Source of the DNA: Macrostomum lignano
Taxonomy: Eukaryota
Length of the DNA: 64,000 nt
NCBI GenBank assembly: GCA_002269645.1
Contig: NIVC01001672.1
Coordinates: 119,428-183,427, forward strand
Direction: 5' to 3'
The translations under genes were made by a program, and so were the position numbers. Of the stretch, positions 1-62,548 are shown piece after piece. Each line of letters begins with the position of its first letter. The first letter of the stretch is position 1. The notes beneath the pieces are model-generated. The model worked only from the letters and a program-made list of their open reading frames with translations. It did no database searches and was not told the origin of the DNA.

Positions 1-913
1 ACACCGCAACTGTCTGTCTGCGAGGCGACTCAAACGGATTCCGTGCTTCATGCTCTCTGTCGTTTCAGTGTCCCGGAGTTTCGGAGAAATTCGATAAGCC
101 GGCGATTAGCCGACGACTCGGTCGGCATCGCGCCGTTGGCGTTTGTGCCGATGGTCGTGGTTCATGTGCATGGCTTTGCGGCCTTGACCTTGATCAGCAT
201 ACGCTATCTCGATGCTGTAACCGTCTAATACGATGACGGCAGTGTTAGGATCCCCTTTTGTCTTATAAAATTGGCCGATTAAGGCTCCAGTCCCCGGCCT
301 TGTACCTGATTCTGGTTCTTTGGTGTCTAATTTAAGCTGCGACGGGGCTGTGAGAGCTCGCGGCCAACATTCGAAATGAACCTACAATTACATGTAAGAA
401 GGCTAAATGAACCTACACAAACATGATTCATACGATCCCGCAGCTACGGCTCCATGCCGTTAATTTCCCTTTTGATGGAGTCAACCATTCATTCTGCAAG
501 CCTTTTGCTTGCGGGTGCCTATAGATGGAGTCTTTAGAGCAACAGTCTCGTTCCTCGTAGTCTCGCATCGTGACACTCAACAGCGTCGTATGTCGCTCAC
601 TTGTTCGTTGAGAAACGAATTTTATTTGTCTATTGAAAAGATAAAAACGAGACTGTGTCCTGCCATCGGTTCGATGGCAGTGTGTCGATCTGTTTGGATA
701 GGCGCATTGTCAATCGACTGGATTGGCAAAAGTACAAGATAAAGAAGATTGAAACTAAAATATGCATCTTCCTACTTGAAAATACGCTCGTACGTGTAAG
801 TAGAATTGTAGATTCTTAAACCATGCTAATATGGACTCGGATAACCAAGATGGGCTCAACAACAGCAGCAACAAAAATACGCTGCATGTGTGGGTCTTCA
901 GAAGCCAGCGTCA

Positions 914-1110
914 TTAAGACAGCAGGCAGTCGACGAAGCACCGGAGTGCACGCGCCTGTCCTTGTCGGTAGGGCGCGCCTGGAGCGTCAGCATGCAGCAG
1001 CACCTCCTGCACCGGCTGGGGGCAGTGCGACTCGGCTTGGATAATATGGCTTGCCAGCTGGAGTCGCCGACGGCGAAACAGCTGGGTCGCTTGGACGTAG
1101 CTCAGCCTTT
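914..1110 (-). mobile_element. Decayed 3' fragment of an RTE-clade non-LTR retrotransposon (post-RT region)
   Basis: Minus strand reads (T)QLFRRRRLQLASHIIQAESHCPQPVQEVLL...YRQGQARALRCFVDCLLS*, aligning to LRRRRLQLAGHVIRAEGCCPQPVQDVLL...FRRGQARTRRYVDCLLC of the copy at 45611-46449; indels present. Confidence 0.75.
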
Positions 1111-2229
1111 AGCTTTTTTAGCTCAGTTAGACCATAGACAAAATTTCTGCTCATCTGAGAACGAGATTCATCCAACAACGAACGGTAGGTAGAGCTGTCG
1201 TTAACCTTTGCGAAGGATGGTAAAAAATTCATCCCCAGACTATAGCAATCCATTCAGGTAGTATATATCATCCTTTGAATAATGAATACATAGAACTAAT
1301 TATAAGCAGACAAGAAATGAATTAGAATTGCGTTTTGTTTAAATAAAATTGAGTAATGCACGTAGGAAGTCAGGAAGAAAGAATTCGGTAAGTTTATATT
1401 GCGGCAGGCAAGTAACCCGTTTTGTGTCTGACAAGACGCATCTTTACCGAATGAATCCAGACCGCGACTGCGCAATGCCGCGATTACGGTTTTCTCTCAA
1501 ATTGCAAAAGCTGTTTAAGTATTCTTAAGCTGCATTGTGGTTGCAAAACGGATAACGAAAACTCTAATTTGAGCTGTTACGCTAGCGTAACATGATCGCG
1601 TCTGAATTTGAATGAACTCGAAGTGACTGCATCAATTTAAGAGGCTTCTATTAGTGGATCAGGCACTTAGCGGCTCAAATTCGGTGACTAGAAGAGACTC
1701 GTGGAACCCGCGAACAGCTAAAGTAAAGCTTTGGAGTCCGAAAGTTGCACTGCAGCCTGACAATACACGAAAGTATATAACTGTTCCACATTCTGAGCTA
1801 TTCACACCCACGGCACAGAGTGTGTACACATGTTTGACCATGAGAAAGTCAGAGCCCGTGTAAACTTTATGTAGGCCTATCCATGTGCGTTCTCAGGGGT
1901 CACAGCGGAACGGGCATTACTTGACTTATCCACAGGGGCTCCAGGCATCTGGATACAGCGGGGAGGCGTTGCATGCTAATCCCTGGCGACCACGGTCAGC
2001 TGGTGCCTGTGTCCTCAGCGCGGTCCCGCTCTGAAGAGTCCAGGAGGCTTGGTGTTGGCACCACTTACGATGGCTTGATTCTAGACTGGAGGCTTCAGTC
2101 ACATGAATATTGATGACATGTCCGTCTCCTGGCGATTTTGTCCGATTGTGAGTGCCCTGTCGAGTCCGATCGGTAATGCCCGGACTACAGGTGGCCTTGG
2201 CTCGATCTATGGTCACCGACTTCGCTCAG

Positions 2230-2278
2230 CCAATCGCGACAGTCGAGTTGTGCGGTCTGAAGCGGCCGTCTATTTAAA
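2230..2278 (+). promoter_or_regulatory. Putative core promoter of the defensin-like gene (CCAAT box 2230-2234, TATA-like TATTTAAA 2271-2278)
   Basis: Motifs lie 95-145 bp upstream of the ATG at 2373 in the expected order. Confidence 0.45.
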
Positions 2279-2372
2279 GTCGGAGATTTTTCCCAACCAG
2301 ACTCCGCCCGATCATCAGCTCGAATCGACAACTCACTGCAGCTAGGATAAGAAGTTCCCCGAGACAAGCTCA

Positions 2373-2765
2373 ATGGCTCAAAAGCTCGTCCAGCATCTTG
2401 CTTTGATGCAGCTGCTGCTTCTGCTGCTCCTGCTGCACAGCGGCGGCGGCGGCTGTAGCAGCGCCGGCCTCGATCTCGACGCCGGCCTTGAGACAGAGGA
2501 CGACAGCGCTGCAGTCGTCGGCCTCGAGACCGACAAGAGATGTGAGGCTTTGCCTGTCTAGCTCGTATCAAATTGACATTGAAATAAACTTAATTGACAT
2601 AATTGACACTAACTGACATCGGCAGACATGCACACCGGCCTGTCCTACTGCACCAGGCTGTGCCACTACAACTTCGGCCGGCACGCCAGATGCCGCGGCT
2701 ATTTCAATTCGGTCAGCCGCGGCTGCGACTGCGTCTGCGCCGCGTTCAACGGCTGGGGCCGTTGA
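2373..2765 (+). CDS. Secreted cysteine-rich defensin-like prepropeptide, 102 aa; join(2373..2541,2626..2765)
   Basis: Exon 1 gives a signal peptide ([31 protein letters not shown]), an acidic propiece and KR. 84-nt intron GTGAGG...ACTAAC branch...GGCAG in phase 1. Exon 2 gives YMHTGLSYCTRLCHYNFGRHARCRGYFNSVSRGCDCVCAAFNGWGR*. AATAAA at 2886. Confidence 0.85.
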
Positions 2766-3028
2766 CTGACCAGTATCGAGACTGCTCGAGCCCAATGCTC
2801 GTGTCTGCAACCGCGGCTTTGCAAAACGTTTCACTGACAATCATAAAGTTCCTGACGATCTGGAACAGCGAGATCATAGTTCTAGAATAAAACGATAATA
2901 AACGAGAAGAGTAGTTATGCTAGACTAATTAAAGAGACTTATCAGTTTTTTTCTTGGAAATAAGTATGTTTTTGTTTTAGAAAGTCTCATCTCTCTGGTA
3001 TTTAAAAGCTTTTGAGACCCTCTGTTGC

Positions 3029-3711
3029 TTGAAAGCATGCAGCTCTCTGCGGTTTGAAAGCAACAGCTCTCTGCGGTTTGAAGTCAACAGCTCTCTGAGG
3101 TTTGAAGGCAACAGCTCTCTGCGGTTTGAAGGCAACAGCTCTCTGCGGTTTGAAGGCAACAGCTCTCTGCGGTTTGAAGGCATGCAGCTCTCTGCGGTTT
3201 GAAGGCAACAGCTCTCTGCGGTTTGAAGGCAACAGCTCTCTGCGGTTTGAAGGCAACAGCTCTCTGCGGTTTGAAGGCAACAGCTCTCTGCGGTTTGAAG
3301 GCAACAGCTCTCTGCGGTTTGAAGGCAACAGCTCTCTGCGGTTTGAAGGCATGCAGCTCTCTGCGGTTTGAAGGCAACAGCTCTCTGCGGTTTGAAGGCA
3401 ACAGCTCTCTGCGGTTTGAAGGCAACAGCTCTCTGCGGTTTGAAGGCAACAGCTCTCTGCGGTTTGAAGGCAACAGCTCTCTGCGGTTTGAAGGCACAGC
3501 TCTCTGCGGTTTGAAGGCAACAGCTCTCTGCGGTTTGAAGGCATGCAGCTCTCTGCGGTTTGAAGGCAACAGCTCTCTGCGGTTTGAAGGCAACAGCTCT
3601 CTACGGTTTGAAGGCAACAGCTCTCTGCGGTTTGAAGGCAACAGCTCTCTGCGGTTTGAAAGCATGCAGCTCTCTGCGGTTTGAAGGCATGCAGCTCTCT
3701 GCGGTTTGAAA
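3029..3711. repeat. Minisatellite, 24-bp unit (GCAACAGCTCTCTGCGGTTTGAAG), about 28 copies
   Basis: Tandem periodicity; source of the spurious SSLRFEGN / PSNRRELL ORFs. Confidence 0.95.
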
Positions 3712-4274
3712 TGACCTGTGGTATTTAAATGATCAGAAGTCAACAATACTTCGTGAGAGCTACAAAGTGGCTGGCAAAGATGAGCAATCAAGACGCTAAA
3801 ATTAGATATCCCAGTTGCGTCGAACGGAAAATCAATCAGCGTTAAAACTAGCGAAAGGTTTCAAAGACGCGGAGAATATTTATCAGTCTGCAGCCGGAAA
3901 ATATCGTCAAAGCAAATTCCCTAATTAAGCCGCAGTTTGAGATTCCTGAGCAAATCTTCCTAGCGGAATTTGTAAACTGCCGATGCATCAATACCAAACA
4001 GCTTTGCAGCTTTGGGGAGACATCGAGTTTCCTTTTGCCAGCTGGCCCGAATGAGGCTTCAGTCTAATTAGCAGCGGCCAGCTAGTAGAATTCTGCAAGG
4101 AAATCTGCAGCAAACCAGTCCTGAAATTCTACACTTTGACTCTTCCTGCACCATCCTGAGACGTGGACACCTGAGAGTTCAGTAGTGGAAATTTATCTGT
4201 CAAAGTCTTTCACACAGAAAAATTTACCAAGCTGTGTTAGTTTTAGCTTCTGTCTACGAGCCCAGTGCGTCTAC

Positions 4275-5786
4275 ATGTAGGATCAATGTAGGATCATGTC
4301 ATATAGGATCATGTAGGATCATGTGGGATCGTGTAGAATCATGTCATATAGGATCGTGTAGAATCATGTCATGTAAGATCATGTAGGATCACGTCATGTA
4401 GGATCGTGTAGGATCATGTAATGTAGGATCGTGTAGAATGATGTAATGTAGGATCGTGTAGGATCATGTTATGTAGGATCGTGTAGAATGATGTCATGTA
4501 GGATCGTGTAGGATCATGTTATGTAGGATCGTGTAGAATCATGTAATGTAGGATCGTGTAGGATTATGTCATGTAAGATCGTGTAGAATCATGTAATGTA
4601 GGATCGTGTAGAATGATGTCATGTAGGATCGTGTAGAATGATGTCATGTAGGATCGTGTAGAATGATGTCATGTAGGATCGTGTAGGATTATGTTATGTA
4701 GGATCGTGTAGAATCATGTAATGTAGGATCGTGTAGGATTATGTCATGTAAGATCATGTAGGATCACGTCATGTAGGATCGTGTAGGATTATGTCATGTA
4801 AGATCGTGTAGAATCATGTAATGTAGGATCGTGTAGAATGATGTCATGTAGGATCGTGTAGGATCATGTTATGTAGGATCGTGTAGGATCATGTAATGTA
4901 GGATCGTGTAGGATCATGTTATGTAGGATCGTGTAGAATGATGTCATGTAGGATCGTGTAGGATTATGTCATGTAAGATCATGTAGGATCACGTCATGTA
5001 GGATCGTGTAGGATTATGTCATGTAAGATCGTGTAGAATCATGTAATGTAGGATCGTGTAGAATGATGTCATGTAGGATCGTGTAGGATCATGTTATGTA
5101 GGATCGTGTAGAATCATGTAATGTAGGATCGTGTAGAATGATGTAATGTAGGATCGTGTAGGATCATGTTATGTAGGATCGTGTAGAATCATGTAATGTA
5201 GGATCGTGTAGGATTATGTCATGTAAGATCGTGTAGAATCATGTAATGTAGGATCGTGTAGGATTATGTCATGTAGGATCGTGTAGAATGATGTCATGTA
5301 GGATCGTGTAGAATGATGTCATGTAGGATCGTGTAGAATGATGTCATGTAGGATCAATGTAGGATCATGTCATGTAGGATCGTGTAGAATCATGTAATGT
5401 AGGATCGTGTAGAATCATGTAATGTAGGATCGTGTAGAATATGTCATGTAGGATCAATGTAGGATCATGTCATATAGGATCGTGTAAGATCATGTCATGT
5501 AGGATCGTGTAAGATCATGTCATGTATGATCGTGTAGAATCATGTCATGTAGGATCGTGTAGAATCATGTAATGTAGGATCGTGTAGAATATGTCATGTA
5601 GGATCAATGTAGGATCATGTCATATAGGATCGTGTAAGATCATGTCATGTAGGATCGTGTAAGATCATGTCATGTAGGATCGTGTAAGATCATGTCATGT
5701 ATGATCGTGTAAGATCATGTCATGTAGGATCGTGTAAGATCATGTCATGTAGGATCGTGTAGGATCACGTCATGTAAGATCGTGTG
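4275..5786. repeat. Composite minisatellite, about 25-bp unit built of TAGGATC(A/G)TG subunits
   Basis: Tandem periodicity over about 1.5 kb. Confidence 0.95.
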
Positions 5787-6352
5787 TAGGGTCCTTTAGT
5801 CGGATTGAGAAAAGAGTTTAAAAGCAGCAGCTAATAAGTAGGTGGCTCATATAGAGAAGATTGATGCGAAATAGCATAGAAATTTTGGAGTTGGAATGCT
5901 GTCTATTTATGAGGATTATCGGAACACAATTGCCAGAGCAAAACAAATATATTTAGCAATCAGTTAGCACAAAATCCTACTGAGATTTTAGCAAAAATTA
6001 GCAAAATTAGCAAAATTATGGCACAAAAAAATGAGGTTTTCAATTATTTTAATATAAGCACAGCCAATTTCTTATCTGAAAAAAACGCCTCGCAATAAAA
6101 TTAAAAAATACTACTTTTAATTTTCTTACTACTTTTGAAAGTAGCAACACAGCGGGGGAACACATGGCAGCCAAAAACACCGAAGAATTTGGACCAGAAA
6201 GTGCAAATTATCAAAATACTCATAACGATTGTTCGACTGGATGAAGCTGAGAGCAAAGCCTTATGGAGATCGTGAGGATGGGGAAGTGGAGAATAGGGAT
6301 CTCGGTAGCAATTGACACATTCTGGGCCACTGAAGATGCAATGAGCGAGATA

Positions 6353-7437
6353 TGGGTCAGTGCGGAGATGGGTCAGTGAGGGAGGTGGGTCAGTGAGGGA
6401 GGTGGGTCAGTGAGGGAGGTGGGTCAGTGAGGGAGGTAGGCTCAGTGGGTAAGTGGGAGAGGTGGGTCAGTGAGGGAGGTGGGTCAGTGAGGGAGGTAGG
6501 CCAATGGGTCAGTGAGGGAGGTGGGTCAGTGGGTAAGTGGGAGAGGTGGGTCAGTGAGGGAGGTGGGTCAGTGAGGGAGGTGGGTCAGTGAGGGAGGTGG
6601 GTCAGTGAGGGAGGTAGGCCAATGGGTCAGTGAGGGAGGTGGGTCAGTGGGTAAGTGGGAGAGGTGGGTCAGTGAGGGAGGTGGGTCAGTGAGGGGGGTG
6701 GGTCAGTGAGGGAGGTGGGTCAGTGAGGGAGGTGGGTCAGTGAGGGAGGTGGGTCAGTGAGGGAGGTGGGTCAGTGAGGGAGGTGGGTCAGTGAGGGAGG
6801 TGGGTCAGTGAGGGAGGTGGGTCAGTGTGAGAGGTAAGTCAGCGAGGGAGGTGGGTCAGTGAGGGAGGTAGGCCAATGGGTCACTGAGGGAGGTGGGTCA
6901 GTGGGTAAGTGGGAGAGGTGGGTCAGTGAGGGAGGTGGGTCAGTGGGTAAGTGGGAGGTGGGTCAGTGAGGGAGATAGGTCAGTGGGTAAGTGGGAGGTG
7001 GGTCAGTGAGGGAGGTAGGTCAGTGGGTAAGTGGGAGAGGTGGGTCAGTGAGAGAGGTGGGTCAGTGGGTCAGTGGGGAGGTGGGTCAGTCGTGAGAGGT
7101 GGGTCAGTGGGTCAGTGAGGGAGGTGGGCCAATGGGTCAGTGAGAGAGGTGGGTCAGTGAGGAAGGTAGGCCACTGGGTCAGTGAGGAGGTGGGTCAGTG
7201 GATCAGTGTGGGAGCTGGGTCAGTGTGTCAGTGAGAGAGGTGGGTCAATGGATCAGTGAGAGAGGTGAGTCAGTGAGGAAGGTGGGTCAGTGGGTCAGTG
7301 GAGGAGTGGGTCAGTGGGGGAGGTGGGTCAGTGGGGAGGTGGGTCAGTCGGGGGAGGTGGGTCAGTGGGTCAGTGGGGGAGGTGGGTAAGTGAGTGAGGG
7401 AGGTGGGTCAATGAGATAGGTGGGTCAGTGGGTCAGA
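6353..7437. repeat. G-rich minisatellite, 17-bp unit (GGGTCAGTGAGGGAGGT)
   Basis: Tandem periodicity with variant units. Confidence 0.95.
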
Positions 7438-7911
7438 TTGAGAACAGAATCAATGATGAAGAAGTACCAGAGTGCATGCTGAGCTAAAGAAGCAAAAATC
7501 AAATATAAAAAATCAAAAAAGAGCTCAGAACCGAGCTCTGAGCTGTTTTTACTCATATATAAATTCTAAAACTATCAATTTACATTTTTTCAAGACATTT
7601 TAGCAGTAAAAACAGTCAAGCGGTAAGTAAAACACGCGCCGAGACAGCTGATCGCAGAGTAGAAAATTAGTAATCTGGCCCAAATATTGATTAATAAGCA
7701 ATTAGCAGGTACAGACAAAAGCAGATTCACAATTTGACTGTCACAATATTGATGCAAGTGACACAGGACCATAGTAAGCGCGCAATACAGGCAGTATGGG
7801 GCATACGTGAAGCAATAAACAATTAGTAATAATAATATTAGAAACTTCAAGAAACCCATTGGTATGAAGGGTTTTTTATTATAGCGTGTGTCGTGACACA
7901 TCAACTTCACT

Positions 7912-8410
7912 CTCAAATGGAATGGCACCCTTCTCAAATGAAATGGCACCCTTCTCAAATGAAATGGCACCCTTCTCAAATGGAATGGCACCCTTCTCAA
8001 ATGAAATGGCACCCTTCTCAAATGGAATGGCACCCTTCTCAAATGAAATGGCACCCTTCTCAAATGAAATGGCACCCTTCTCAAATGAAATGGCACCCTT
8101 CTCAAATGAAATGGCATCCTTCTCAAATGAAATGGCACCCTTCTCAAATGAAATGGCAACCCTTCTCAAATGAAATGGCAATCCTTCTCAAATGAAATGG
8201 CAACCCTTCTCAAATGAAATGGCACCCTTCTCAAATGAAATGGCACCCTTCTCAAATGAAATGGCATCCTTCTCAAATGAAATGGCCATTTATTTGAATG
8301 GCATCCTTCTCATATGAAGTGGCAACACTTCTAAAATAAAGTCGCACCCTACTCAAATGAAATGGCAACCCTTCTCAAATGAAATGGCAACCCTGACATG
8401 GCACCCTTCA
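7912..8410. repeat. Minisatellite, 21-bp unit (TCAAATGAAATGGCACCCTTC), immediately 3' of the kinase stop codon
   Basis: Tandem periodicity; degenerate towards 8410. Confidence 0.95.
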
Positions 8411-8454
8411 CAATGAAGACCTGAACACCCGGAAGGACCACAGTACAAGCCGTG

Positions 8455-11400
8455 CTACAATTGCGACTGCCGATAAGCCGCCGGCAGGCGCACAGATTCA
8501 AAGCTGCTGCCGCGGTCGCTGCCGTCTCCGGCCTCCGACCCCGACGACGCTGCCGATTCAGACGAGGACGCAGTCGATGCGGTCGCTTCGCCGTCAGCTT
8601 GCCGCCGCTTCTGTCGCCGCCGACTCCGCCGCCGTTTCTGCTGCTTCTGCTGTTGCTGCTGCTTGCGCTGACCGTTGCTGCTCCCGGCGGGAGGCCGCTT
8701 CTGCGGCGCGAACCGGAGTCGCCGATCGTCCTCAGTGGCGAAGGCGGCCGGATCCAGCCGGCGGGCGGCCAGCGCTTCAAACAGCTTGCCGCCGGCCGGG
8801 GTAGCGGAGGTCTCGCAGCCGGCGCCAAGCTCGGCGTAAAATGGCGATTGGGCGAGGTCGGGGAGGCTGGCCAAGCGTCGGCGCGGGTTCTTCTGCAGCA
8901 GCTGCTCGACGGTGTAGCGGCACTGCCAGCTCAGCCGGCCGGGCGTCTCGTATTCGTGACCGCGGATCATCTGCGCCATCTGCCGGTGCGACCGGGCGCC
9001 GTGCAGCGGGAACTGCGGGGAGAGGTGTGGGATTGGTGTGGGGTGTGAGGTGTGGGATTAGTGTGGGTATGAGGTTTGGGATTAGTGTGGGGTATGAGGT
9101 GTGGGGTGTGAGATTTGTGTGGGATTGGTGTGGGTTGTGAGATGTGGGATTGGTGTGGGTTGTGAGATGTGGGATTGGTGGGGGTTGTGAGATGTGGGAT
9201 TGGTGTGGGTTGTGAGATGTGGGATTGGTGTGCGTTGTAAGGTGTGGGGTTTGAGGTGTGGAATATGTGTGGGGTAAGATGTGGGGTATGAGGTGTGGGA
9301 TGTGAGGTGTGAGATTAAAAGTCTACGTTGATTGGTAGGGGATATGACGTGTGAGATTGGCGTAGGGAGTGCAGTGTGGGGATTAATGTGGGGTTTTATG
9401 TGGGACTAGGTGTGGGTTTCGTGCGGAACATGAGAAGGGAAGGAAGCTGCATGAAATAGACTGGGCCTCACCTTGCCGCAAACCAGAGCATAGAACAGAA
9501 TGCCCAGCGACCACCAGTCGACGGAGTGGTCGTATGGCTGACCGTTGAGCATCTCCGGAGCTGCCGGGCGGGCGAGGGTGGTATTGGAACTCTTGATGCA
9601 GAGATGGAGAAGAATCTACACGAATGTGTGAATGAATTGAACACCTGTGTGAATGGATTGAACACCTGTGTGAATGGATTGAACTCCTGTGTGAATGGAT
9701 TGAACTCCTGTGTGAATGGATTGAACTCCTGTGTGAATGGATTGAACTCCTGTGTGAATGAATTGAACTCCTGTGTGAATGGATTGAACTCCTGTGTGAA
9801 TGGATTGAACTCCTGTGTGAATGGATTGAAATCCTGTGTGAATTTACTGAATCTGCACGTCAATTAATTGAACATATGCGTGAATCACAAGATGTACACG
9901 TGAACAGAAAGAGCCAGATTGTGAATCACAGAATCTACACGTGAACAGAAGGAGCCAGATTGTGAATCACAGAATCTACACGTGAACAGAAAGAGCCAGA
10001 TTGTGAATCACAGAATCTACACGTGACAGAAAGAGCCAGATTGTGAATCACAGAATCTACACGTGAACAGAAGGAGCCAGATTGTGAATCACAGAATCTA
10101 CACGTGAACAGAAAGAGCCAGATTGTGAATCACAGAATCTACACGTGAACAGAAGGAGCCAGATTGTGAATCACAGAATCTACACGTGAACAGAAAGAGC
10201 CAGATTGTGAATCACAGAATCTACACGTGAACAGAAGGAGCCAGATTGTGAATCACAGAATCTACACGTGAACAGAAAGAGCCAGATTGTGAATCACAGA
10301 ATCTACACGTGAACAGAAAGAGCCAGATTGTGAATCACAGAATCTACACGTGAACAGAAAGAGCCAGATTGTGAATCACAGAATCTACACGTGAACAGAA
10401 AGAGCCAGATTGTGAATCACAGAATCTACACGTGAACAGAAAGAGCCAGATTGTGAATCACAGAATCTACACGTGAACAGAAAGAGCCAGATTGTGAATC
10501 ACAGAATCTACACGTGAACAGAAAGAGCCAGATTGTGAATCACAGAATCTACACGTGAACAGAAGAAACCAGAGTGTAAATCACAGAATCTGCTAGAACA
10601 GAGATACATAAAGACCGTGAAAGCACAGACAACGCACCCGCATAGGTGAGGGTGCCGCAGATAGTCCTAGTGTTTTGTCCTCGCTTAAGCCACTTGCACA
10701 ATCCGAAGTCCACCAGGACCGGATGGCCGGCAGCGTCCAGTACGACATTCTCCAGCTTCAAGTCCCGGAAGATCACACCGCGGCTATGCAGAAAGTCCAA
10801 GCAGCAGGCCAGTTCGGCAACATAGAACCTGGCCAGAGGCTCCGAATAGCGGCCGTGCCTGCGCCAGTCGGCAAACAGCTCCCCATTAGGCAGGAACTGC
10901 AGCAGCAGGTAGAGCCGCTTCCTAGTCTGCCAGTGGCACTGCAGAGCGGCCACGAAAGTCGAATAGCCGATAGCCAGTTGGACTCCGACTTCGTCTTTGC
11001 TTTGGCGGACGACGCCGTGGCCCTGGGATAGTAGGCGGGCCTTGTCGATCACCTTCAACGCGTACAGCTGCTTGTCATCCTCGGAGCGAACTTTTAACAC
11101 GTTGCCGAATGCGCCGGCAGAGATCACGTCGAGTACCTGAGCGCATGCATAAGATGATTCGATTTTTATGTTAAATACGAGCATACATGCGCGCGAGGTC
11201 TACTGCAAGTAGAAATGAAAACATTTTACATAGGGAGACGAAGATTTTAGAATCAGATATTTACGAACTATAATAAGTGTATAGATGGGCCACTTAGGCT
11301 TATTGACTAGATAAAACAGTTTCACTACTTTCAGTTCAGTAGCAAAGAAGAACATGTAAGCTATTTTAAGAAAAGAAAAAGCAACTGGAAAGACTTGTTG

Positions 11401-12236
11401 ACGTAAAAAGTAACTTGCTATTGGTTGGTGCAAGCTCCATTAAGATGTGCATCACAGCAGCTTTAGGTGGAACACAGAGTAAGGCCAATAAAATAGATGG
11501 GTGCAAGGGCGCCGTTAAGCTAATAGTTAGGTGGGCCAATAAATGAGCTTTGTTTAAAATAAATTAAAACGCTTCCATATTACTTGCTGCTGAACTGAAA
11601 GTAGCTTACACGTAAATGTGCTGAATGGCACACCTAGTTATTATACAGTATCCAGTCCAGTTACTATCACATGCAGGAGATTGGACCAAATTTTTGGAAT
11701 CGAACCCCCGGGTCCTCCTCTGACGCTTCCAAGCTCACTTCAAGCTCGCCGAGTTCGTGCGGCCCCGGTCGCACGGGGAACTCCGGCAGGAACAGCGACT
11801 CGATGAACGGCACGGGCCATTTCGACTTCGATCCGCCAAACGGATCGCCAAGTGTAGATTGTTGAATGCACCGACGGCTGCCGCGATTCCAGCGGTCAGC
11901 CAGCTCAGAAACTGGCGCTGCTGAGCCAGCCATAATCTGATGCTGTTGCTCAGGCTGCGGCTGCTGCTGCTGATGCTCAGACTCCAGCTCCGGTTCCGGT
12001 GGAGTTGCCAATCGATTTTGCTCGGCCCCGCTAACCAGCTCGTCAGCGTCCACGCCGTCAGCTCTGGCGACGCCGAGCCCCGACGAGGCCGCCCGGCCGC
12101 TGTGCGACCTGAAGCTCAGGCGGGAGGCCCAGCGGCGGATGCGGCGAAAAGACGACTGGCGCAGGCGGTGCAGCGAGGCGAAGCTGTGCTCTCGGGCACC
12201 CCCACGCTCGTAAACGACGCCCTGCCGGTTGCCCAT
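8455..12236 (-). CDS. RSKR: Ribosomal protein S6 kinase-related (RSKR/SGK494-like) AGC-type kinase; complement(join(8455..9012,9472..9560,10638..11136,11739..12236))
   Basis: [19 protein letters not shown]-terminal motif typical of SGK494. Kinase motifs [41 protein letters not shown]. All three introns are GT-AG with phases 0,1,0 joining in frame. Confidence 0.9.
9024..9420. repeat. GT-rich degenerate minisatellite in kinase intron 3
   Basis: Repeated GTGTGGG(A/G)TT-type units. Confidence 0.85.
9622..10590. repeat. Two adjacent minisatellites in kinase intron 2: 21-bp (GTGTGAATGGATTGAACTCCT, 9622-9852) and 41-bp (GTGAATCACAGAATCTACACGTGAACAGAAAGAGCCAGATT, about 9880-10590, about 17 copies)
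   Basis: Tandem periodicity. Confidence 0.95.
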
Positions 12237-12500
12237 GACAACCAAAACAAAGCTGGCGTCTCTCGATCTCGATGTCTGCGCACTGTTTTGTTATAGCTTT
12301 TTACTCTTTTTTAGTGTACCAATTGTCTCTGTAGGGTTGATTGATGAAGCATCAGGTATGATTTGATAGGAATGAAAAATTGCATATTCTTTTCCTCCAT
12401 GTCTTGTGTTGCATCTATTCTAGCCAATGTAATCTTTAGTTTAGTTAATAGATTATAACCAGTGTAATTATATTTATATTCAACAGCTTTTTATATTCAG

Positions 12501-12731
12501 CTGCTAAGGGTTAAGGAGCACTGTACAAGAACTAGCGATGTGTACGACCACCTCCTTATGTGCAACCAATGCACTAAAGTTAGGTATGCTGAGAAATTTG
12601 AAATTATCGATTGTAACTGCCAGAGTATGAAGTTGTCTACTCTTGAGGCATTGTACATTAAATAGCTAAAGCCCACCATGAACATCTAACTTGGTGGTAG
12701 AGGGGCGAGTGTCTATCTAAAAGTGTTCTAA
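12501..12731 (+). mobile_element. Penelope-like element relic: C-terminal part of a GIY-YIG endonuclease with premature stops
   Basis: Frame from 12501 reads LLRVKEHCTRTSDVYDHLLMCNQC...FEIID...LSTLEALYIK*LKPTMNI*LGGRGASVYLKVF*, matching the RxKEH...VYDH...EALYIK..KP.LN.Q pattern of PLE endonucleases. Confidence 0.7.
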
Positions 12732-12835
12732 CCCTATGTGCTTGCCTCTTATTTAGGGCCAACTAACTCTGCATACCCATACTTGCATCATTTTGGCTTA
12801 CTAGACTTAAAAATTTACCATCTCTTTGCATCAAT

Positions 12836-22531: not shown

Positions 22532-25500
22532 TCACTGTCGCATTTCTATTTCAAAGTAGGTCAGATGGCCGAGCTGGCTGATGGGTTTGCCTGAATCTGA
22601 GCTATTAAAGGTCAGCACTGAGCCACGTCGCAGGTACCGAGTGCCGAAGATGGTGCAGTGCGTGTAGAGACCGAACACTGTCTCTATGCAGCTGATCCAG
22701 GACTGCCCGTTAACTTTAGCCGAAGTGTCAACTGGCACAGATGGGCTTGGATTCCAAAAAGTCACCTTGAAATTGGTGATGGGTGAATTGGTGATGGATG
22801 AATTAGTGATGGATGAATTAGTGATGGATGAATTAGTGATGGATGAATTAGTGATGGATGAATTGGTGATGGATGAATTGGTGATGTATGAATTGGTGAT
22901 GTATGAATTGGTGATGGATGAATTAGTGATGGATGAATTAGTGATGGATGAATTGGTGATGGATGAATTGGTGATGGATGAATTGGTGATGTATGAATTG
23001 GTGATGGATGAATTAGTGATGGATGAATTAGTGATGGATGAATTGGTGATGGATGAGTTGGTGATGGATGGATTGGTGATGGATGAGTTGGTGATGGATG
23101 AATTGGTGATGGATGAGTTGGTGATGGATGAATTGGTGATGGATGAATTGGTGATGGATGAGTTGGTGATGGATGAGTTGGTGATGGATGAATTGGTGAT
23201 GTATGAATTGGTGATATATGAGTTGGTGATGTATGAATTGGTGATATATGAGTTGGTGATGTATGAATTGGTGATGGATGAATTGGTGATGGATGAATTG
23301 GTGATGGATGAATTGGTGATGGATGAGTTGGTGATGGATGAATTGGTGATGGATGAATTAGTGATGTATGAATTGGTGATGGATGAGTTGGTGATGGATG
23401 AATTGGTGATGGATGAGTTGGTGATGGATGAATTGGTGATGGATGAGTTGGTGATGGATGAGTTGGTGATGGATGAATTGGTGATGGATGAATTAGTGAT
23501 GGATGAGTTGGTGATGTATGAATTGGTGATGGATGAGTTGGTGATGGATGAATTGGTGATGGATGAGTTGGTGATGGATGAATTAGTGATGGATGAATTA
23601 GTGATGGATGAATTGGTGATGGATGAATTGGTGATGTATGAATTGGTGATGGATGAGTTGGTGATGGATGAATTGGTGATGGATGAATTAGTGATGGATG
23701 AATGGGTGATGTATGAATTGGTGATGGATGAATTGGTGATGGATGAATTGGTGATGGATGAGTTGGTGATGGATGAATTGGTGATGGATGAGTTGGTGAT
23801 GGATGAATTGGTGATGGATGAGTTGGTGATGGATGAATTGGTGATGGATGAGTTGGTGATGGATGAATTGGTGATGGATGAATTGGTGATGGATGAGTTG
23901 GTGATGGATGAATTGGTGATGGATGAGTTGGTGATGGATGAGTTGGTGATGGATGAGTTGATGATGGATGAATTGGTGATGGATGAATTAGTGATGGATG
24001 AGTTGGTGATGTATGAATTGGTGATGGATGAGTTGGTGATGGATGAATTGGTGATGTATGAGTTGGTGATGGATGAATTGGTGATGGATGAATTGGTGAT
24101 GGATGAGTTGGTGATGGATGAGTTGGTGATGGACTAATCGGTGATGGACTAATCGGTGACGGGACTAATCGGTGACGGGACCAACCGGTGATGGACGGAT
24201 CGGTGATGGGACTAATCATGATGGACTATTTGTAAACAAATGTAGACAAAAAATACACAATTTTCAACAAACAGCAGGCCTTACAGCTGCATTGATTCGG
24301 TAAACACCATCCAACTGAATTAAAACTTCGGATCCGCGGTCAGTGTGTCGCAGATGAAAGAAATCAGTCATTCTAAAGCAGCTGTATTCCTCCGCTTCCG
24401 CACATTTTAGCTGATAATTGGCTGCAATTTTGACGTTAAAACGGAATGTAAATGCAACACGCTAGACTATGTAAGGCTATGAGACTTCAGCTTTTCGGCA
24501 TTGATTTACTTGTTTTCGACGTATGAATTGAACTCGTTTTGTTCTGAACTTGCAGCTCAAGTCGTAGTCCGATCCACTTCTAAAAAGATAATTTCAAGAG
24601 ATAGCGTGTGAACTTTCAAATTTTAATTGAATATTACCGAGTCAGGGTCGACTCGACTCACTCATTTTGGGGCCGCAGGCACTCATTTTGGGGTCGCAGT
24701 ACTCGTTTTGGGGTCGCAGGCACTCATTTTGGGGCCACAGGCACTCATTTTAGCGCCGCAGGCACTCATTTTGGCGCTGCAGGCACTCATTTTAGCGCCG
24801 CAGGCACTCATTTTGGCGCTGCAGGCACTCATTTTAGCGCCGCAGGCACTCATTTTGGCGCTGCAGGCACTCATTTTAGCGCTGCAGGCACTCATTTTAG
24901 CGCCGCAGGCACTCATTTTGGCGCTGCAGGCACTCATTTTGGCGCTGCAGGCACTCATTTTGGCGCTGCAGGCACTCATTTTAGCGCTGCAGGCACTCAT
25001 TTTAGCGCCGCAGGCACTCATTTTGGCGCTGCAGGCACTCATTTTGGCGCTGCAGGCACTCATTTTGGCGCTGCAGGCACTCATTTTGGCGCTGCAGGCA
25101 CTCATTTTAGCGCCGCAGGCACTCATTTTGGCGCTGCAGGCACTCATTTTAGCGCCGCAGGCACTCATTTTGGCGCCGCAGGCACTCATTTTAGCGCCGC
25201 AGGCACTCATTTTGGCGCTGCAGGCACTCATTTTGGCGCTGCAGGCACTCATTTTGGCGCTGCAGGCACTCATTTTAGCGCCGCAGGCACTCATTTTAGC
25301 GCTGCAGGCACTCATTTTAGCGCCGCAGGCACTCATTTTGGCGCTGCAGGCACTCATTTTGGCGCTGCAGGCACTCATTTTGGCGCTGCAGGCACTCATT
25401 TTGGCGCCGCAGGCACTCATTTTGGCGCCGCAGGCACTCATTTTGGCGCTGCAGGCACTCATTTTAGCGCCGCAGGCACTCATTTTGGCGCTGCAGGCAC

Positions 25501-26453: not shown

Positions 26454-27158
26454 CTTAATTCCCTGTGAATTACCTTGTGACCTTGTCGATCGACTTGTTT
26501 CTCGTTCGTAGTCGGTCTTGCAACGGCAAAAACAGAAGTTCAATTTCAGATTTTAGCTTACGGTCAGCCAACGATGTGCAGGCCCGATTGCAGCTATAAA
26601 TATAGTTGGCTTTCTGCTGCAGTATTTATCATGCTCTGCATCTTTTTGCTAAGTAGGTGGCTTACAATTTGTTTAAAGCTTGTTCTACATTTCTAAACAG
26701 CTTTTGCGCACATTCTTAAAGGCTAAGAATTAACACATTATTTACATTAGACTATCCTATGTTGAATACACAATTAAATCTTGAACTGTGCGTACATTTA
26801 GGCATGTGGTGTAGCTACATAGCTGACTTACGGGGCGCCAGCTATAGAACAGAATATAGAGTTCCCAAAGACAGTGAGACTGCTCATGCTTAACTGCTGG
26901 AAGCTGGCTGTTTCTTGTCATACAGTGTATGGAGTGGAGTGACTGCCACAGGAGAATCTCGGTTGAAAAAATATCGGGTCGGGCAATACGCCTGATAGCA
27001 CGCTTTCAAATTCCCTTTGTTGAGCCTTGGCACTGGCAGCTCCAGCAATCCCCCCCCCCTGAGGCTGAGCCTGACTATTTTTTTAATGCGAATTATTTTT
27101 AGACATTTTTAGAACTTACAAAGTATAAGTAACTGTTTCCTGTACTCCGCTGTCAGCC

Positions 27159-27230
27159 TCCTCGATAGTATAGTGGTCAGTATCTCCGCCTGTCACGTGG
27201 AAGGCCCGGGTTCGATTCCCGGTCGGGGAG
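27159..27230 (+). tRNA. trnD-GUC: tRNA-Asp (anticodon GTC)
   Basis: 72-nt cloverleaf TCCTCGATAGTATAGTGG...TCCGC-CT-GTC-AC-GTGGA...GGTTCGATTCCC...TCGGGGAG with paired acceptor and anticodon stems, intact A and B boxes, and an oligo-T terminator from 27235. Confidence 0.95.
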
Positions 27231-28360
27231 TAAATTTTTTGAGGCCATAGGCATTTGGTATCGGTATCGACGAACATTTTTTCAAAAAACTTTTATAATC
27301 TTTGAACACTTCAAAATGAATTTGTTGGCTATTACTTTCCATAAAACTTTGTAAGAAAATTTCCTTTTGCAATTGCCATATGGTTCAGCAATATCAAAAA
27401 TTGTAAAAATAGTGCTTAGAGCAATGTTCAAATGGCTGAATATCAATAGTACTCGTAAAGAAGTACAAAAAATGAAACCAGTCATTAAAATTTTAAATTC
27501 AGCCCACTATCTGTATCTGTTGGTTTTTGGTTGGGTTTGCTAATATTGAAACGCCGATATGTATAGTAGTGTACTTTCCGGGGCGAAATTTCACAATCTA
27601 GTTAGGTGCCTAAAATTGCTTTAAAATCTGCCTTGAAATGCAGCAGTAAATTTTTGTCTCTTTTGTGTAAGAAGATAAGCATTATTTTCTGTCCATGTGA
27701 GACTATATGTACGTGAAATTAGAAGCTGAATTTTGTTTAATAATTTTTAAGCCTAAAAGGGTTTAACCTTTAAACCTACTGCTTTTTGCGGCAAGTAGTA
27801 AAGTTAGCGTTTTAGCGTTTTATTATAAAACCGTTTACTGCTTAAAAACAAATACTGCTTGCTCATTCCACAGATACTATATTATTATAGTACCTGTGGC
27901 TCATCCATGCGAAGCAATTGCAATTTCAGAGCATTTTGAATATCGCGACCCGTACAAGCACGATAAGTTCCTAAATGCAACAGGAATTTTAGCAGTCTGA
28001 CAAACTATGAAAGAAAGATGTAAATAATCCAACCAAATTAGATCGGATAGAGCATTGCCCTGATCACCGCCTCGAATTCGGCTAACCTTGTCCTTGTCTT
28101 ATATGTGGTCTACCACCCGAATTTCTTATTTTTATATCGCTGATTTCGATCAGAAGCAAAAATATGACTTTCAACCCTTTAAAGCCTCTTATACACAAAG
28201 CATTTATAGACGATATGTTCTGCACTCTGCATATAGAGCTGGACAGAAGCTGCAAGCGGTTGAAGAAAACAGTCAAGTACGCCCGTCAGCGTCTACAGTG
28301 CAGTCCACTGGCTGTTTACACTGCATGTCATCCAACCCTGTTTACTTTCTCATACAACTA

Positions 28361-28730: not shown

Positions 28731-29339
28731 GGCAGGGGTTCCAGCTCATACTTTTCTGTTGAAAAAAAACTGCTTGGGCAGTTTTGAAGTGGGGGAGGGG
28801 TGGAGAACCAGACTGAAAATTGACTGGAGGCAGCAGCAGCAGCAGGCTGGGCGAGGGTGGGTGAGGAGGCTGCAGAGCGAGAAGCATTGTACTTGGTAGC
28901 CCTGTGGCCATAATTTAGTAAATAAGCCAATCACATCACAGCGCGTGTATAGGTGAGGCAGCGACTTTAGTCTTGAAGGAAACTGCGTAGCAGACAGAGG
29001 CTTCTTTTGGATTGGAGAGCAAGGTTTCTGCATTGAGGCAGAGTGCACTTACCTCATGCTTCACGAACTCTCCGCCTATTATAGAGTGTAAATGTACATT
29101 TTTAATGCCGAGAGCCTTGGGTTGGCTGGCTGCTGTTGAACAAAAGCACCGGCCAAATTAGCCTCGCCCAGGTGAAACTGTAACCACGGAGGGCCGCACA
29201 GGGCAGCAGAGCAGACATACTGGATATCGCTGTATACACCCCACTTTTCCGCTACTAAATTTATTACAGAGAAAGTCTTATTATCTGACTTGAACTCGAA
29301 CAATAGGCAGAGGTAATCCATACTTCCATAGCTCGGACA

Positions 29340-30416
29340 ATGAGCGAAAACGTCAGCCTCATGGTGTCTGCTCAGCCGAAGCTGCCAGAAGGGCAGCAGC
29401 CACAGCAGCAGCAGCAGCAGCAGCAGCCGCTGAGCAGTGCACAGAAGCCTCGACCGTTAGGCCGAGTCCGAGTCCAGGGCCAGAGGGCGAACGGTCAGCC
29501 GAGAAAGTCCGAGGACTTCAGCGTCCAAGGCGAGGCATTTAGCGCGGTGGAAAAGCAGCAGAGCAGCAGCACCGGCAGCCTGCCGCCCATCACTAGCGGC
29601 CAGCAGACGCCGCAGCACCAGCGCCAGTCCAGCATCCAATCGACGTCGTCCAGCAGTCCAACTAGCGACGCCTTTAGGCTAACCCGGCTGCAACAGCGCG
29701 AGCAGGAGCTGCTGAAGAAGCTGCAGGACGCGGCCGCCCGAGAGAAGCTGCTCAAAGAACAAGTCGACAAGCTGGAGAAGATGCTAGGGACGGCGCAGAA
29801 GCTGCTGGACGATGAGAGAAAGGCGAGACAGGGTGTTGAGGCGCAACTGGCCGACTCGTCAGACAGCGGCGACAAATACCGCCTGCTGTACGAGGAAGAG
29901 TGCCGAGCTCACCAGGCCACAGCGCAGCGAATTGAGCAGCTGCAGGAGCTGCACAGGGAGGAGACGGCCAGACTGATGCAGCAGCTGGACAGTCTGAAAG
30001 ATCAGTTGAAGCAGACCGAGTCGCGGCACGAGGACGAGCTAGCGAAGCTGCACCGGGAGCATCAGCAGGCTCTGTCCGATCGGGACAAACGAATCGACAA
30101 TCTCAAGCGCCAGGTGGCCGGCGCGCTGGGCACGAATTCGCACGAGCGACAGTCGCAAATTGATCAGCTGAACAAAGAGCTGCAGAAGATGGTCCACGAA
30201 GTTGAAACACTTCGACGACGGACTGGGGGCGGCGGCTGTCAGCAGTGCCCGACCAAGGACGCGGCGATGCGGGACCAGGGCGAGCAGATCCGACAGCTGG
30301 GCGCGATTTGCCAACGGTTCCGAGGCCAGCTGAGTGAACAGGAGCAGATGCTCATCATGCTGCTTGGAAGCAAAACTTCCACCGGGGCTGCTGGGGTTTC
30401 AAAAGCTAAGCAATGA
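29340..30416 (+). CDS. Intronless coiled-coil protein, 358 aa, with Q/S-rich N-terminus; family not recognised
   Basis: Long ORF with the same GC3-rich codon usage as Hsp70 and myosin; heptad-like E/Q/K/L/R-rich C-terminal two-thirds; acceptor-like TTCCATAG 8 nt before the ATG. Confidence 0.8.
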   Translation: MSENVSLMVSAQPKLPEGQQPQQQQQQQQPLSSAQKPRPLGRVRVQGQRANGQPRKSEDFSVQGEAFSAVEKQQSSSTGSLPPITSGQQTPQHQRQSSIQSTSSSSPTSDAFRLTRLQQREQELLKKLQDAAAREKLLKEQVDKLEKMLGTAQKLLDDERKARQGVEAQLADSSDSGDKYRLLYEEECRAHQATAQRIEQLQELHREETARLMQQLDSLKDQLKQTESRHEDELAKLHREHQQALSDRDKRIDNLKRQVAGALGTNSHERQSQIDQLNKELQKMVHEVETLRRRTGGGGCQQCPTKDAAMRDQGEQIRQLGAICQRFRGQLSEQEQMLIMLLGSKTSTGAAGVSKAKQ

Positions 30417-31584: not shown

Positions 31585-32326
31585 CAGATAGTGACAGTCA
31601 GATAGTGTCAGTCAGATAGTGGCAGTCAGATAGAGTCAGTGTCAGTCAGATGTCAGAGTCAGTGTCAATCAGTGTCAGTCAGTCAGACTAGTGTCAGTCA
31701 GATGGTAGTCAGATAGTGGCAGTCAGATAGTGGCAGTCAGATAGTGGCAGTCAGATAGTGTCAGTCAGATAGTGGCAGTCAGATAGTGGCAGTCAAATAG
31801 TGGCAGTCAGATAGTGGCAGTCAGATATAGTGTCAGTCAGATGGTAGTCAGATAGTGGCAGTCAGATATAGTGTCAGTCAGATGGTAGTCAGATAGTGGC
31901 AGTCAGATAGTGGCAGTCAGATAGATGGCAGTCAGATAGTGGTAGTCAGATAGTGGCAGTCAGATAGTGGCAGTCAGATGGCAGTCAGATAGTGTCAGTC
32001 AGATAGTGGCAGTCAGATAGTGGCAGTCAGATAGTGGCACTCAGATAGATGGCAGTCAGATAGTGGCACTCAGATAGATGGCAGTCAGATAGTGGCAGTC
32101 AGATAGTGGCAGTCAGATAGTGGCACTCAGATAGATGTCAGTCAGATAGTGGCAGTCAGATAGTGGCAGTCAGATAGTGGCACTCAGATAGATGGCAGTC
32201 AGATAGTGGCAGTCAGATAGTGGCACTCAGATAGATGGCAGTCAGATAGTGGCACTCAGATAGATGGCAGTCAGATAGTGGCAGTCAGATAGTGGCAGTC
32301 AGATAGTGGCACTCAGATAGATGGCA
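31585..32326. repeat. 14-bp minisatellite (CAGTCAGATAGTGG)
   Basis: Tandem periodicity. Confidence 0.95.
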
Positions 32327-33676
32327 GCGTTATCTTTTTTAAATCCCCTCCGTGACGCTCAAATAAATTGCGGAACAGTGAACTGTGTAGCCAGGGTCAT
32401 TGAGTAGTCCGAGATTGAACGAATTCACGACAACATCATTCTATAGAATGAAATCGGAGTCCAGAGATCGGATGTCTCATCACCGCAACAATTCCGCTGC
32501 TCGCGCGCACACTGCGAGGTACATGCAAGAGCATGCCAGAAGTTCGGGAAACTCAAGCACTTTGGCAAGTTGTTTAAAAGTGCAAGTAGCCATTCCAGTA
32601 TTACATGTAAATGTAAATGCACATGTGTTCGAGGCTAAGCGTCAGCAGAGCGTCCGTCTGCTCCAAAATGGCATCTCTTTGCTTCTTGGCCGCTTGAAGC
32701 TGGATCCAGACAATTTTTTTTCCTCTGAGTTGCCAATTAACATTTTGAGAGAAGAAGAGGTTTGGAGTGGTGTGTCCGTGAATGGTGCCAAGCTGCTGTT
32801 TGACAATGTTAAGGACATTGTCGTTGTACTCGCCACATTCTCTGTTGCCTTCAATTTGCAGCACGTGCCTTCTTCTCTAGAGGCATTTCTGGGGTATTCG
32901 AAGTTATTTCTAAGTTGCGTCGGCGTGATGCCATTTCTCGGGAGTCTGCGCCATCGCTAGTAGCAGGCTTTCGTTAGATGTGGTGCACTTGACACTCTTA
33001 AAGTAGCAGTTGAACACATACAATCTTGTCGTCGACAAAGCTGTTAAAATTAAAATAAAAAAATAAACAAATCAACGTAATAATAATTCTTATTAATTTT
33101 TAATTAATACATCATTTCTAATTCAGCATCTCTGAAAAAATCATGCATTTAAGAATAAAGAATTCGTTTTGCCTTAAATTATTTTTTATGCTATATTCGT
33201 AACTCATAAGGGAAAATTAATGGCTGGGCTGGACCTCCGTACGGACCTTATATTGGACCTTAACATCCGGACCTTTACAAACATCCGGACCTTTAGAGGT
33301 CCGTATATAGTGACGGTGCGGACCTTTGCGTGCGGACCATCTGTGGGCCTTTTTGGGACCTATCGTTCAATCATCATAATCATAATCATAATCATAATCA
33401 TAATCATTCATAATCATCGTTATACCTCACACTTGGTGTGAGGTGAAGAGTTGAGTGCAAGAGTTGAGCATCAACGTTGCTTTCCCAGCCAAAGTTTGAC
33501 AAGGCCCCAAGGGCTCGGAAAAGTCCTTGCAAAGGCTTCATGCATGATTTCCTAGGCTAAATTAAAGATTGACAGATTCATCACCCGTTGTTCAATTCGA
33601 AACGGGTTTCAAATAAAATTGGCCATCTTGTAACTGGCCTGGCATAATGCAGCGGGTTGAGAAGCATAACGTGAAG

Positions 33677-33752
33677 TACTACCGGCCATACCACGTTGAA
33701 AACACCGGTTCTCGTCTGATAACCGAAGTTTAGCAACGTTGGGTTCGGTACT
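33677..33752 (+). pseudogene. 3'-truncated 5S rRNA fragment (pseudogene or SINE3-type head)
   Basis: CGGCCATACCACGTTGAAAACACCGGTTCTCGTCTGATAACCGAAGTTTAGCAACGTTGGG matches roughly the first 75 nt of eukaryotic 5S rRNA; box C and the 3' end are absent. Confidence 0.85.
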
Positions 33753-34036
33753 CGCAGATTTCTAAAATCAATCTAATCAATAAAATCAATAAATAAATAT
33801 GATCTAATAAATAAAATCAATCAATTAAAATCTACAGACTTAATCGTTTCAGCATGTAAATATTGAATAACAGAATGAATTATTCGGTACTAAAACGATC
33901 AATGTTCCCATTTTCTACAATTTCTTTATTTTACAATTGTGAATGTTTTTAAAAAATATACGTTCCACGTTTGCTACTCTCTACTGAAAGTAGGCAACTT
34001 AGACGCAACCGTTAAAATTTGTCAGGCAATCCTTTT

Positions 34037-37492: not shown

Positions 37493-62548
<25,056 letters not shown>

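Follow-up and report, generated by a model that had tools for sequence, protein, structure and literature searches.

Predicted secreted, cationic six-cysteine peptide of Macrostomum lignano, CSαβ-like in motif and predicted topology

A two-exon gene in the window analysed here (the whole 64,000-nt stretch of Macrostomum lignano contig NIVC01001672.1, positions 119,428–183,427; coordinates below count from its first nucleotide) encodes a small precursor with a cationic mature part that carries six cysteines. Our preferred reading of this sequence, to which we give a probability of roughly 0.5, is a lineage-restricted, CSαβ-like secreted peptide that probably serves in host defence. The product is best filed as an uncharacterised secreted cationic cysteine-stabilised peptide rather than as a proven defensin. 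Its likeness to CSαβ peptides lies in the motif and the predicted topology only; membership of the invertebrate defensins is not established, both the canonical cysteine array and a match to a family profile having been looked for and not found. The gene model, an automatic defensin label and an AMP-like prediction are already public, and what is new here is mostly negative: the claim of a hidden gene falls, and defensin membership is not confirmed. Flatworm antimicrobial peptides are little known, and the question of a rearranged CSαβ peptide in flatworms is a modest one that concerns chiefly workers on AMP evolution.

Gene model, annotation and precursor

The coding part of exon 1 (2373–2541, +; 169 nt) runs from the ATG at 2373 to the first base of the Tyr57 codon and is followed by an 84-nt phase 1 intron (2542–2625, +) with a GTGAGG donor, an ACTAAC motif at 2608–2613 and a CAG acceptor. 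The coding part of exon 2 (2626–2765, +; 140 nt including the TGA) supplies the rest of Tyr57 and residues 58–102, and translation of the spliced CDS gives the six-cysteine peptide YMHTGLSYCTRLCHYNFGRHARCRGYFNSVSRGCDCVCAAFNGWGR as its product. Joined across the GT..AG intron, the two exons make a CDS of 309 nt and a precursor of 102 aa. Based on composition counts, the exons have 63–65% GC and a GC3 of 83%, compared to 38% GC in the intron. Five AG acceptors were tried by in-silico splicing, and the Cys-rich product was obtained from 2626 only, the acceptor given in the preliminary description: those at 2547 and 2562 lead to a stop codon after 8–13 codons, and those at 2657 and 2690 yield Ala/Ser-rich tails that lack the Cys array. 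The motifs that had been said to flank the gene were also located. A CCAAT box-like motif lies at 2230–2234 (+; ~140 nt 5' of the ATG) and the TATA-like TATTTAAA at 2271–2278 (+; ~100 nt 5' of the ATG), both with a putative promoter function, and two AATAAA hexamers that may serve as poly(A) signals lie at 2886–2891 and 2897–2902 (+; ~120–135 nt past the stop codon). A bacterial promoter and terminator scan was set aside as irrelevant to a eukaryote.

The 102-aa product is identical (102/102 residues, 100%) to the GenBank proteins PAA64764.1, PAA65225.1 and PAA71963.1 and to UniRef100_A0A267EUX9, which bears out the two-exon structure, the reading frame and the precursor layout first described for this locus. 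The same match disposes of the idea that the gene was hidden or unannotated, since GenBank holds its product three times and it is also listed as fAMP-LP 504 in Irvine et al. 2023. In GenBank, the gene BOX15_Mlig002610 carries the locus tags BOX15_Mlig002610g1 and g3, and assembly GCA_002269645.1 (Mlig_3_7) has it on three of its contigs. Bases 1–12765 of the window match NIVC01001672.1 at 100% identity. The CDS spans 393 bases on both of the contigs for which the locus was fetched (NIVC01001672.1 and NIVC01001717.1), and these two copies are 100% identical over the gene and 400 nt on either side, and 98.4% identical over 8.2 kb. The DV1 assembly is known to be redundant, which explains the three near-identical copies. 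A selection test on the NIVC01001672.1/NIVC01001717.1 pair was uninformative, the gene copies being identical, and the paralogues for which a tBLASTn search had been proposed were found neither in the 64-kb window nor in the two fetched loci.

The GenBank annotation was built from StringTie/TACO genome-guided RNA-seq assemblies together with a de novo transcriptome, with ORFs called by TransDecoder (PMC5730564); the public M. lignano RNA-seq behind it is SRP082513 and SRR2682326. Transcript data thus underlie the annotated intron, taken here at the level of the annotation. The lack of a Logan (SRA-run assembly) source was considered as a sign of missing expression and rejected, because another M. 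lignano gene in the window is likewise NCBI-only. The contrast between GC3 and intron GC, the single productive acceptor, the rarity of the Cys motif among shuffled sequences (see below) and the matching GenBank CDS place the peptide gene beyond chance, and we regard it as almost certainly a real, expressed gene.

The precursor begins with a signal peptide (residues 1–26; 2373–2450, +) that has a poly-Leu hydrophobic core and was positive by SignalP 4.1 in a published screen (PMC10414684 S5), in agreement with the signal peptide of the preliminary description. It is followed by an acidic propiece (residues 27–54; 2451–2534, +), which contains Cys28 and eight acidic residues (5 D, 3 E), and by the dibasic pair K55–R56 (2535–2540, +), a putative prohormone-convertase site at which ProP 1.0 is silent. 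The 46 residues after K55–R56 include six Cys and end in W-G-R-stop, and the 44-mer that excludes the last two residues has five Arg and one Asp. Computed net charges are −8.2 for the propiece and about +4 to +5 for the mature part, so that the described pairing of an acidic propiece with a cationic peptide holds. A seventh Cys, at precursor residue 28 (2454–2456), sits just past the SignalP cut at G26/G27. Cleavage at that point would leave Cys28 without a partner in the propiece; a cut after A31, an alternative site with small residues at −3 and −1, would remove it with the signal peptide.

A C-terminal Gly followed by a basic residue is the signal for peptidylglycine amidation, and Gly101–Arg102 (2757–2762, +) is a possible instance of it, to be exposed by carboxypeptidase trimming. 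In the processing route that we propose, the precursor would enter the secretory pathway and be cut after K55–R56 by an enzyme of the prohormone-convertase type; Arg102 would then be trimmed and Trp100 amidated via Gly101, leaving a 44-residue peptide of ~5.08 kDa with three predicted disulfides. The computed average mass of the 44-mer is 5084.7, which three disulfides and the amide would bring down to about 5078 Da. The same precursor logic is known from damicornin of Pocillopora damicornis, in which a signal peptide, an acidic proregion and a dibasic site precede a cationic six-Cys peptide of ~40 aa that is amidated after removal of Gly; its Cys array differs from that of the flatworm peptide, and its fold probably differs as well. 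The cleavage at KR was not borne out by the published screen, in which ProP 1.0 predicted no propeptide cleavage (PMC10414684), so that the KR processing and the FNGW-amide end of the preliminary description remain putative. The silence of ProP at K55–R56 may reflect the missing P4 Arg that furin-type enzymes prefer, and cleavage by a dibasic protease of the PC1/3 or PC2 type is plausible. That the product is secreted we consider highly probable.

Cysteine framework, predicted fold and relation to CSαβ peptides

The mature part has the framework C-x3-C-x9-C-x10-C-x-C-x-C, and its CxxxC..C..CxC motif was present in 0.9% of composition-preserving shuffles. In the ten-Cys reference array of Tarr, the cysteine-stabilised-helix motif consists of C3, C4, C8 and C9, and a further bond, C2–C6, completes the fold, the canonical CSαβ bonds being C2–C6, C3–C8 and C4–C9 (PMC5116183). 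The flatworm peptide departs from the canonical six-Cys array at two points: its mature part has no Cys before CxxxC, so that C2, the partner of C6, is absent, and it has an extra Cys after CxC.

Structures were predicted using AlphaFold2 without an alignment. The model of the mature part alone (mean pLDDT 75) places CxxxC in a helix (5–16), the single Cys in a strand (21–27) and CxCxC in a second strand (32–38), and the full-length model (pLDDT 63) shows the same order of elements. Foldseek comparisons of both models with the PDB, by a method that is weak on peptides so small, returned no match at E ≤ 0.001; the best defensin, plant AtD90, ranked second with E = 2 and a probability of 0.11. 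The models suggest the disulfide pairs C65–C90, C69–C92 and C79–C94 (precursor numbering), because the single strand Cys would lie opposite the last Cys of CxCxC in the hairpin register. In the proposed fold, one alpha-helix would pack on a beta-hairpin, the helix CxxxC (C65, C69) would be bonded to the CxC of the last strand, and a cross-hairpin disulfide would join the strand C79 to the last Cys in CxCxC. Such a scaffold would be CSαβ-like, of defensin or mytilin type, minus the usual N-terminal disulfide. The chance that the peptide adopts a CSαβ-like fold is about even.

Several features are shared with the invertebrate CSαβ defensins (PS51378, PF01097 Defensin_2; for example Phormia defensin A 1ICA, sapecin 1L4V and MGD-1 1FJN), which are likewise small, cationic and secreted and have three disulfides (predicted in the flatworm peptide). 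Both have CxxxC in a helix and CxC in the last beta-strand, as well as the order helix, strand, strand, all of them by prediction in the flatworm peptide, and the distance from the second helix Cys to the Cys that follows it, nine residues, is exactly that of insect defensin A. Unlike these defensins, the flatworm peptide lacks the N-terminal Cys (C2) and its bond to the strand Cys, and an extra Cys right after CxC turns this motif into CxCxC. In addition, the loop from the strand Cys to CxC has 10–12 residues compared to 4–8 in defensins, and the defensin motif GGYC reads C-R-G-Y-F.

Searches at the sequence level did not recover this likeness. Pfam assigned no family to the precursor or to two variants of the mature part, even at E ≤ 10. 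Homologue searches returned only the protein itself, both in a word-index search of 5.8 billion clusters and in an exhaustive phmmer (HMMER) scan of 1.84 billion representatives, and the peptide is thus an orphan with no sequence relatives detected in either collection. A phmmer search of the PDB yielded neither a defensin nor the mytilin B structure 2EEM, the only hit being a chance match to a glucanase (E = 0.78). We also built a profile from ten canonical CSαβ defensins, which in validation recovered 37 PDB sequences, among them drosomycin and defensins from insects, molluscs, fungi and plants. Against this profile, the flatworm peptide reached an hhalign probability of 0.3% over seven columns and an hmmsearch score of −1.9 bits, a value that full shuffles equalled in 436 of 2000 cases and shuffles with the Cys held fixed in 696 of 2000. 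None of the Smith-Waterman alignments with nine CSαβ peptides (among them mytilins, myticin, MGD-1, Cg-Def, plectasin, termicin and heliomicin) was significant; the best was with mytilin A (z = 2.3 against full shuffles, 0.9 with the Cys fixed).

The automatic UniRef name of UniRef100_A0A267EUX9 cites the PROSITE invertebrate-defensin profile (PS51378), which implies an automatic match to that profile. This name is in mild conflict with the published survey of flatworms, in which lophotrochozoan CSαβ queries (BLAST and HMM) found no CSαβ homologues in 33 flatworm species, Mlig_3_7 included, and whose authors concluded that CSαβ peptides, big defensins and myticalins are not encoded by flatworms (PMC10414684). 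The preliminary description had called the peptide defensin-like. The Cys pattern, the predicted topology, the UniRef name and the positive calls of 8 of 11 AMP predictors speak for that term, whereas the negative Pfam result, a profile score no different from shuffles, the lack of any significant Foldseek match and the missing N-terminal Cys speak against it.

The closest Cys framework known to us is that of mytilin B (Mytilus, PDB 2EEM), with the array C-x3-C-x3-C-x4-C-x11-C-x-C-x-C-x2-C, for which we confirmed our working sequence against 2EEM. In the alignment with mytilin A, the best of the pairwise set, all six flatworm Cys fall on mytilin Cys, and R-C-x-G and the R-G before CxCxC also match. 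In mytilin, the Cys of the strand pairs with the Cys nearest the C-terminus, an arrangement similar to that put forward here for the flatworm peptide. Mytilins have eight Cys and four disulfides, compared to six Cys and three predicted disulfides here, and the mytilin array is not reproduced, the flatworm peptide having no counterpart to the mytilin Cys that comes first in the helix or to the one closest to the C-terminus. In mytilin precursors, the anionic extension lies at the C-terminus rather than in an N-terminal propiece. For mytilin B, z was 1.2 against full shuffles; with the Cys held fixed, similarity to mytilins A and B remains under z = 1, and 2EEM was missed by phmmer. Mytilin B has longer strands (PMC5116183) and a CxCxC strand, and a CxCxC strand is predicted in the flatworm peptide as well.

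[quoted passage not shown] The subset of Cys that it retains is different from that of the flatworm peptide, and it has sequence relatives in the recognisable ABF family; for the flatworm peptide, no relatives were detected.

Proposed role and competing readings

In the preferred reading, the peptide would act as a secreted antimicrobial effector, with the acidic propiece neutralising the cationic peptide until release. Balancing the charge with a propiece in this way is how cationic host-defence peptides are usually kept inactive before release. Irvine et al. 2023 applied SignalP 4.1, ProP 1.0 and 11 AMP predictors to all small helminth proteins, and BOX15_Mlig002610g1 is flatworm AMP-like peptide no. 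504 in their S5 file (PMC10414684). The entry has SP = Y with a predicted peptide from G27 and a blank PP column, meaning that ProP 1.0 saw no propeptide cleavage, and it was AMP-positive by 8 of 11 predictors (72.7%), run on the 76-aa pro-form; having no sequelog in other assemblies, it was filed as "Ungrouped" and dropped (PMC10414684). An antimicrobial function is accordingly a prediction in the published screen, and one that we hold tentatively, at somewhat less than an even chance. A search for data on expression, induction or activity returned nothing: the identifier Mlig002610 does not occur in any searchable full text, and it was not found in the supplements of three M. lignano expression papers (PMC5816591, PMC7336406 and PMC12896417), whose tables may be incomplete.

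Among the competing readings, the one that survives best, though we judge it unlikely, is a signalling peptide of neuropeptide or hormone type, processed at KR, amidated at Gly-Arg and acting on a receptor instead of on microbes. Flatworms have many amidated neuropeptides, and the precursor offers what is expected of an amidated prohormone, namely a predicted signal peptide, a dibasic site directly before the peptide and a C-terminal G-R, the classic amidation signal; small precursors that end in a single peptide are also common among prohormones. However, dibasic and amidation features are common to many AMPs, so they do not discriminate between the two roles. Receptor-bound signalling peptides are usually conserved at least inside a phylum, and no relatives were found in any other animal, flatworms included (coverage of other Macrostomum species is uncertain). 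The combination of a strongly cationic mature part with an anionic propiece is the more typical pattern among host-defence peptides, and the 8 of 11 positive AMP predictors also argue against a signalling role.

The orphan status of the gene, with no orthologue detected, would likewise suit another tissue-specific secreted role, for example in reproduction (prostate or seminal fluid), adhesive glands or the eggshell, classes that are fast-evolving and orphan-like. Genes tied to reproduction are documented to evolve fast in Macrostomum (PMC7336406). No sequence feature of the peptide points to such a role, and the absence of Mlig002610 from reproduction and positional RNA-seq supplementary tables counts weakly against it, given that these tables may be incomplete. 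We consider this possibility quite improbable.

A toxin-like or deterrent peptide, such as an ion-channel blocker on a scorpion-toxin-like scaffold that is released from gland cells or rhabdites, is very unlikely on present evidence. The CSαβ scaffold is common to defensins and to K+/Na+ channel toxins, and few changes interconvert them (PMC5116183). The flatworm peptide is small, basic, predicted to be disulfide-rich and possibly amidated, as such a toxin would be, yet neither the Pfam nor the PDB searches returned a similar toxin family, and the mature part contains no lysine at all and so lacks the functional Lys that pore-blocking toxins have. Diatoms are the food of M. lignano, and no venom is known from this species, both of which count against a toxin.

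A young or spurious coding model, in which a transcribed locus carries an ORF with no selected function and its features arose by chance, would account for the lack of homologues, for a CDS called by TransDecoder from a transcript assembly, for identical genomic copies in which constraint is not measurable and for the long antisense ORFs that exist because of the high GC content, but it is hard to reconcile with the coincidence of independent features (a signal peptide, the charge split between propiece and mature part, KR immediately N-terminal to the Cys-rich region, a CSH-type framework with an even Cys count that 0.9% of shuffles share, G-R at the stop, a GC3 of 83% next to an AT-rich intron, and a compact predicted fold with pLDDT 75 obtained without an alignment) and is very improbable.

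The host-defence reading has consequences that depend on the fold. If the CSαβ fold and the killing of microbes were both true, the peptide would fill a phylogenetic gap and add an unusual disulfide array to the superfamily. The scaffold would then persist in Macrostomorpha, an early-branching group, though diverged beyond the reach of Pfam and HMM searches, and the published claim that Platyhelminthes lack CSαβ peptides (PMC10414684) would be overturned. Otherwise, the peptide is another lineage-specific secreted orphan. The strongest form of this reading, a first genuine flatworm CSαβ-type host-defence peptide with a rearranged array in which a cross-hairpin bond replaces the N-terminal bond, is in our view doubtful. 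The candidate is cheap to test, because a 44-mer can be made chemically and M. lignano is a model animal open to transgenesis and RNAi.

Other features of the window

The region directly 3' of the peptide gene is rich in minisatellites, located at 3040–3710, 4274–5785, 6353–7436, 7911–8394, 9022–9301, 9625–9843 and 9880–10591, with periods of 24, 25, 17/42, 21, 25, 21 and 41 nt; copy numbers reach 60. The 24-nt array begins ~275 nt past the stop codon of the peptide gene. A strong GC skew at 4–8 kb is due to these arrays, and most of the differences between the NIVC01001672.1 and NIVC01001717.1 copies sit in minisatellites. Low-complexity tandem arrays with periods of 8/12 and 14/15 nt were also found at 22686–24219, 31645–32341 and 40076–40900. 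At 22.7–24.2 kb, long ORFs are open on both strands and the GC skew is 0.61; Pfam matches of the spurious ORFs of such arrays are limited to low-complexity models such as ASFV_J13L.

Two non-coding RNA matches lie between 27 and 30 kb: a tRNA-Asp(GTC) gene at 27158–27231 (+), and a borderline SNORA17-like H/ACA match at 29300–29427 (−; 29.4 bits against a gathering threshold of 29, E = 0.12) that overlaps the start of a 358-aa coiled-coil ORF at 29340–30416 (BOX15_Mlig030673). A 76-nt sequence at 33678–33753 (+) aligns with the two termini of the Rfam model for 5S rRNA at 44.5 bits, which exceeds the gathering threshold, with 43 internal model positions missing, and may be a 5S-derived fragment, a pseudogene or a SINE-like element. 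It is located ~530 nt upstream of an intronless, uninterrupted HSP70 ORF of 638 aa (34287–36203, +; Pfam E = 6e-255). The exact sequence of this ORF was not found in the protein collection, where other genes of the window are present, perhaps because its annotation uses another start or because the ORF was removed from the GenBank annotation by filtering. Further coding features include a protein kinase gene (8455–12236, −; 547 aa, Pkinase), ~5.7 kb downstream of the peptide gene, and a myosin motor-domain exon at 53145–54632 (+) in the 53–55 kb region.
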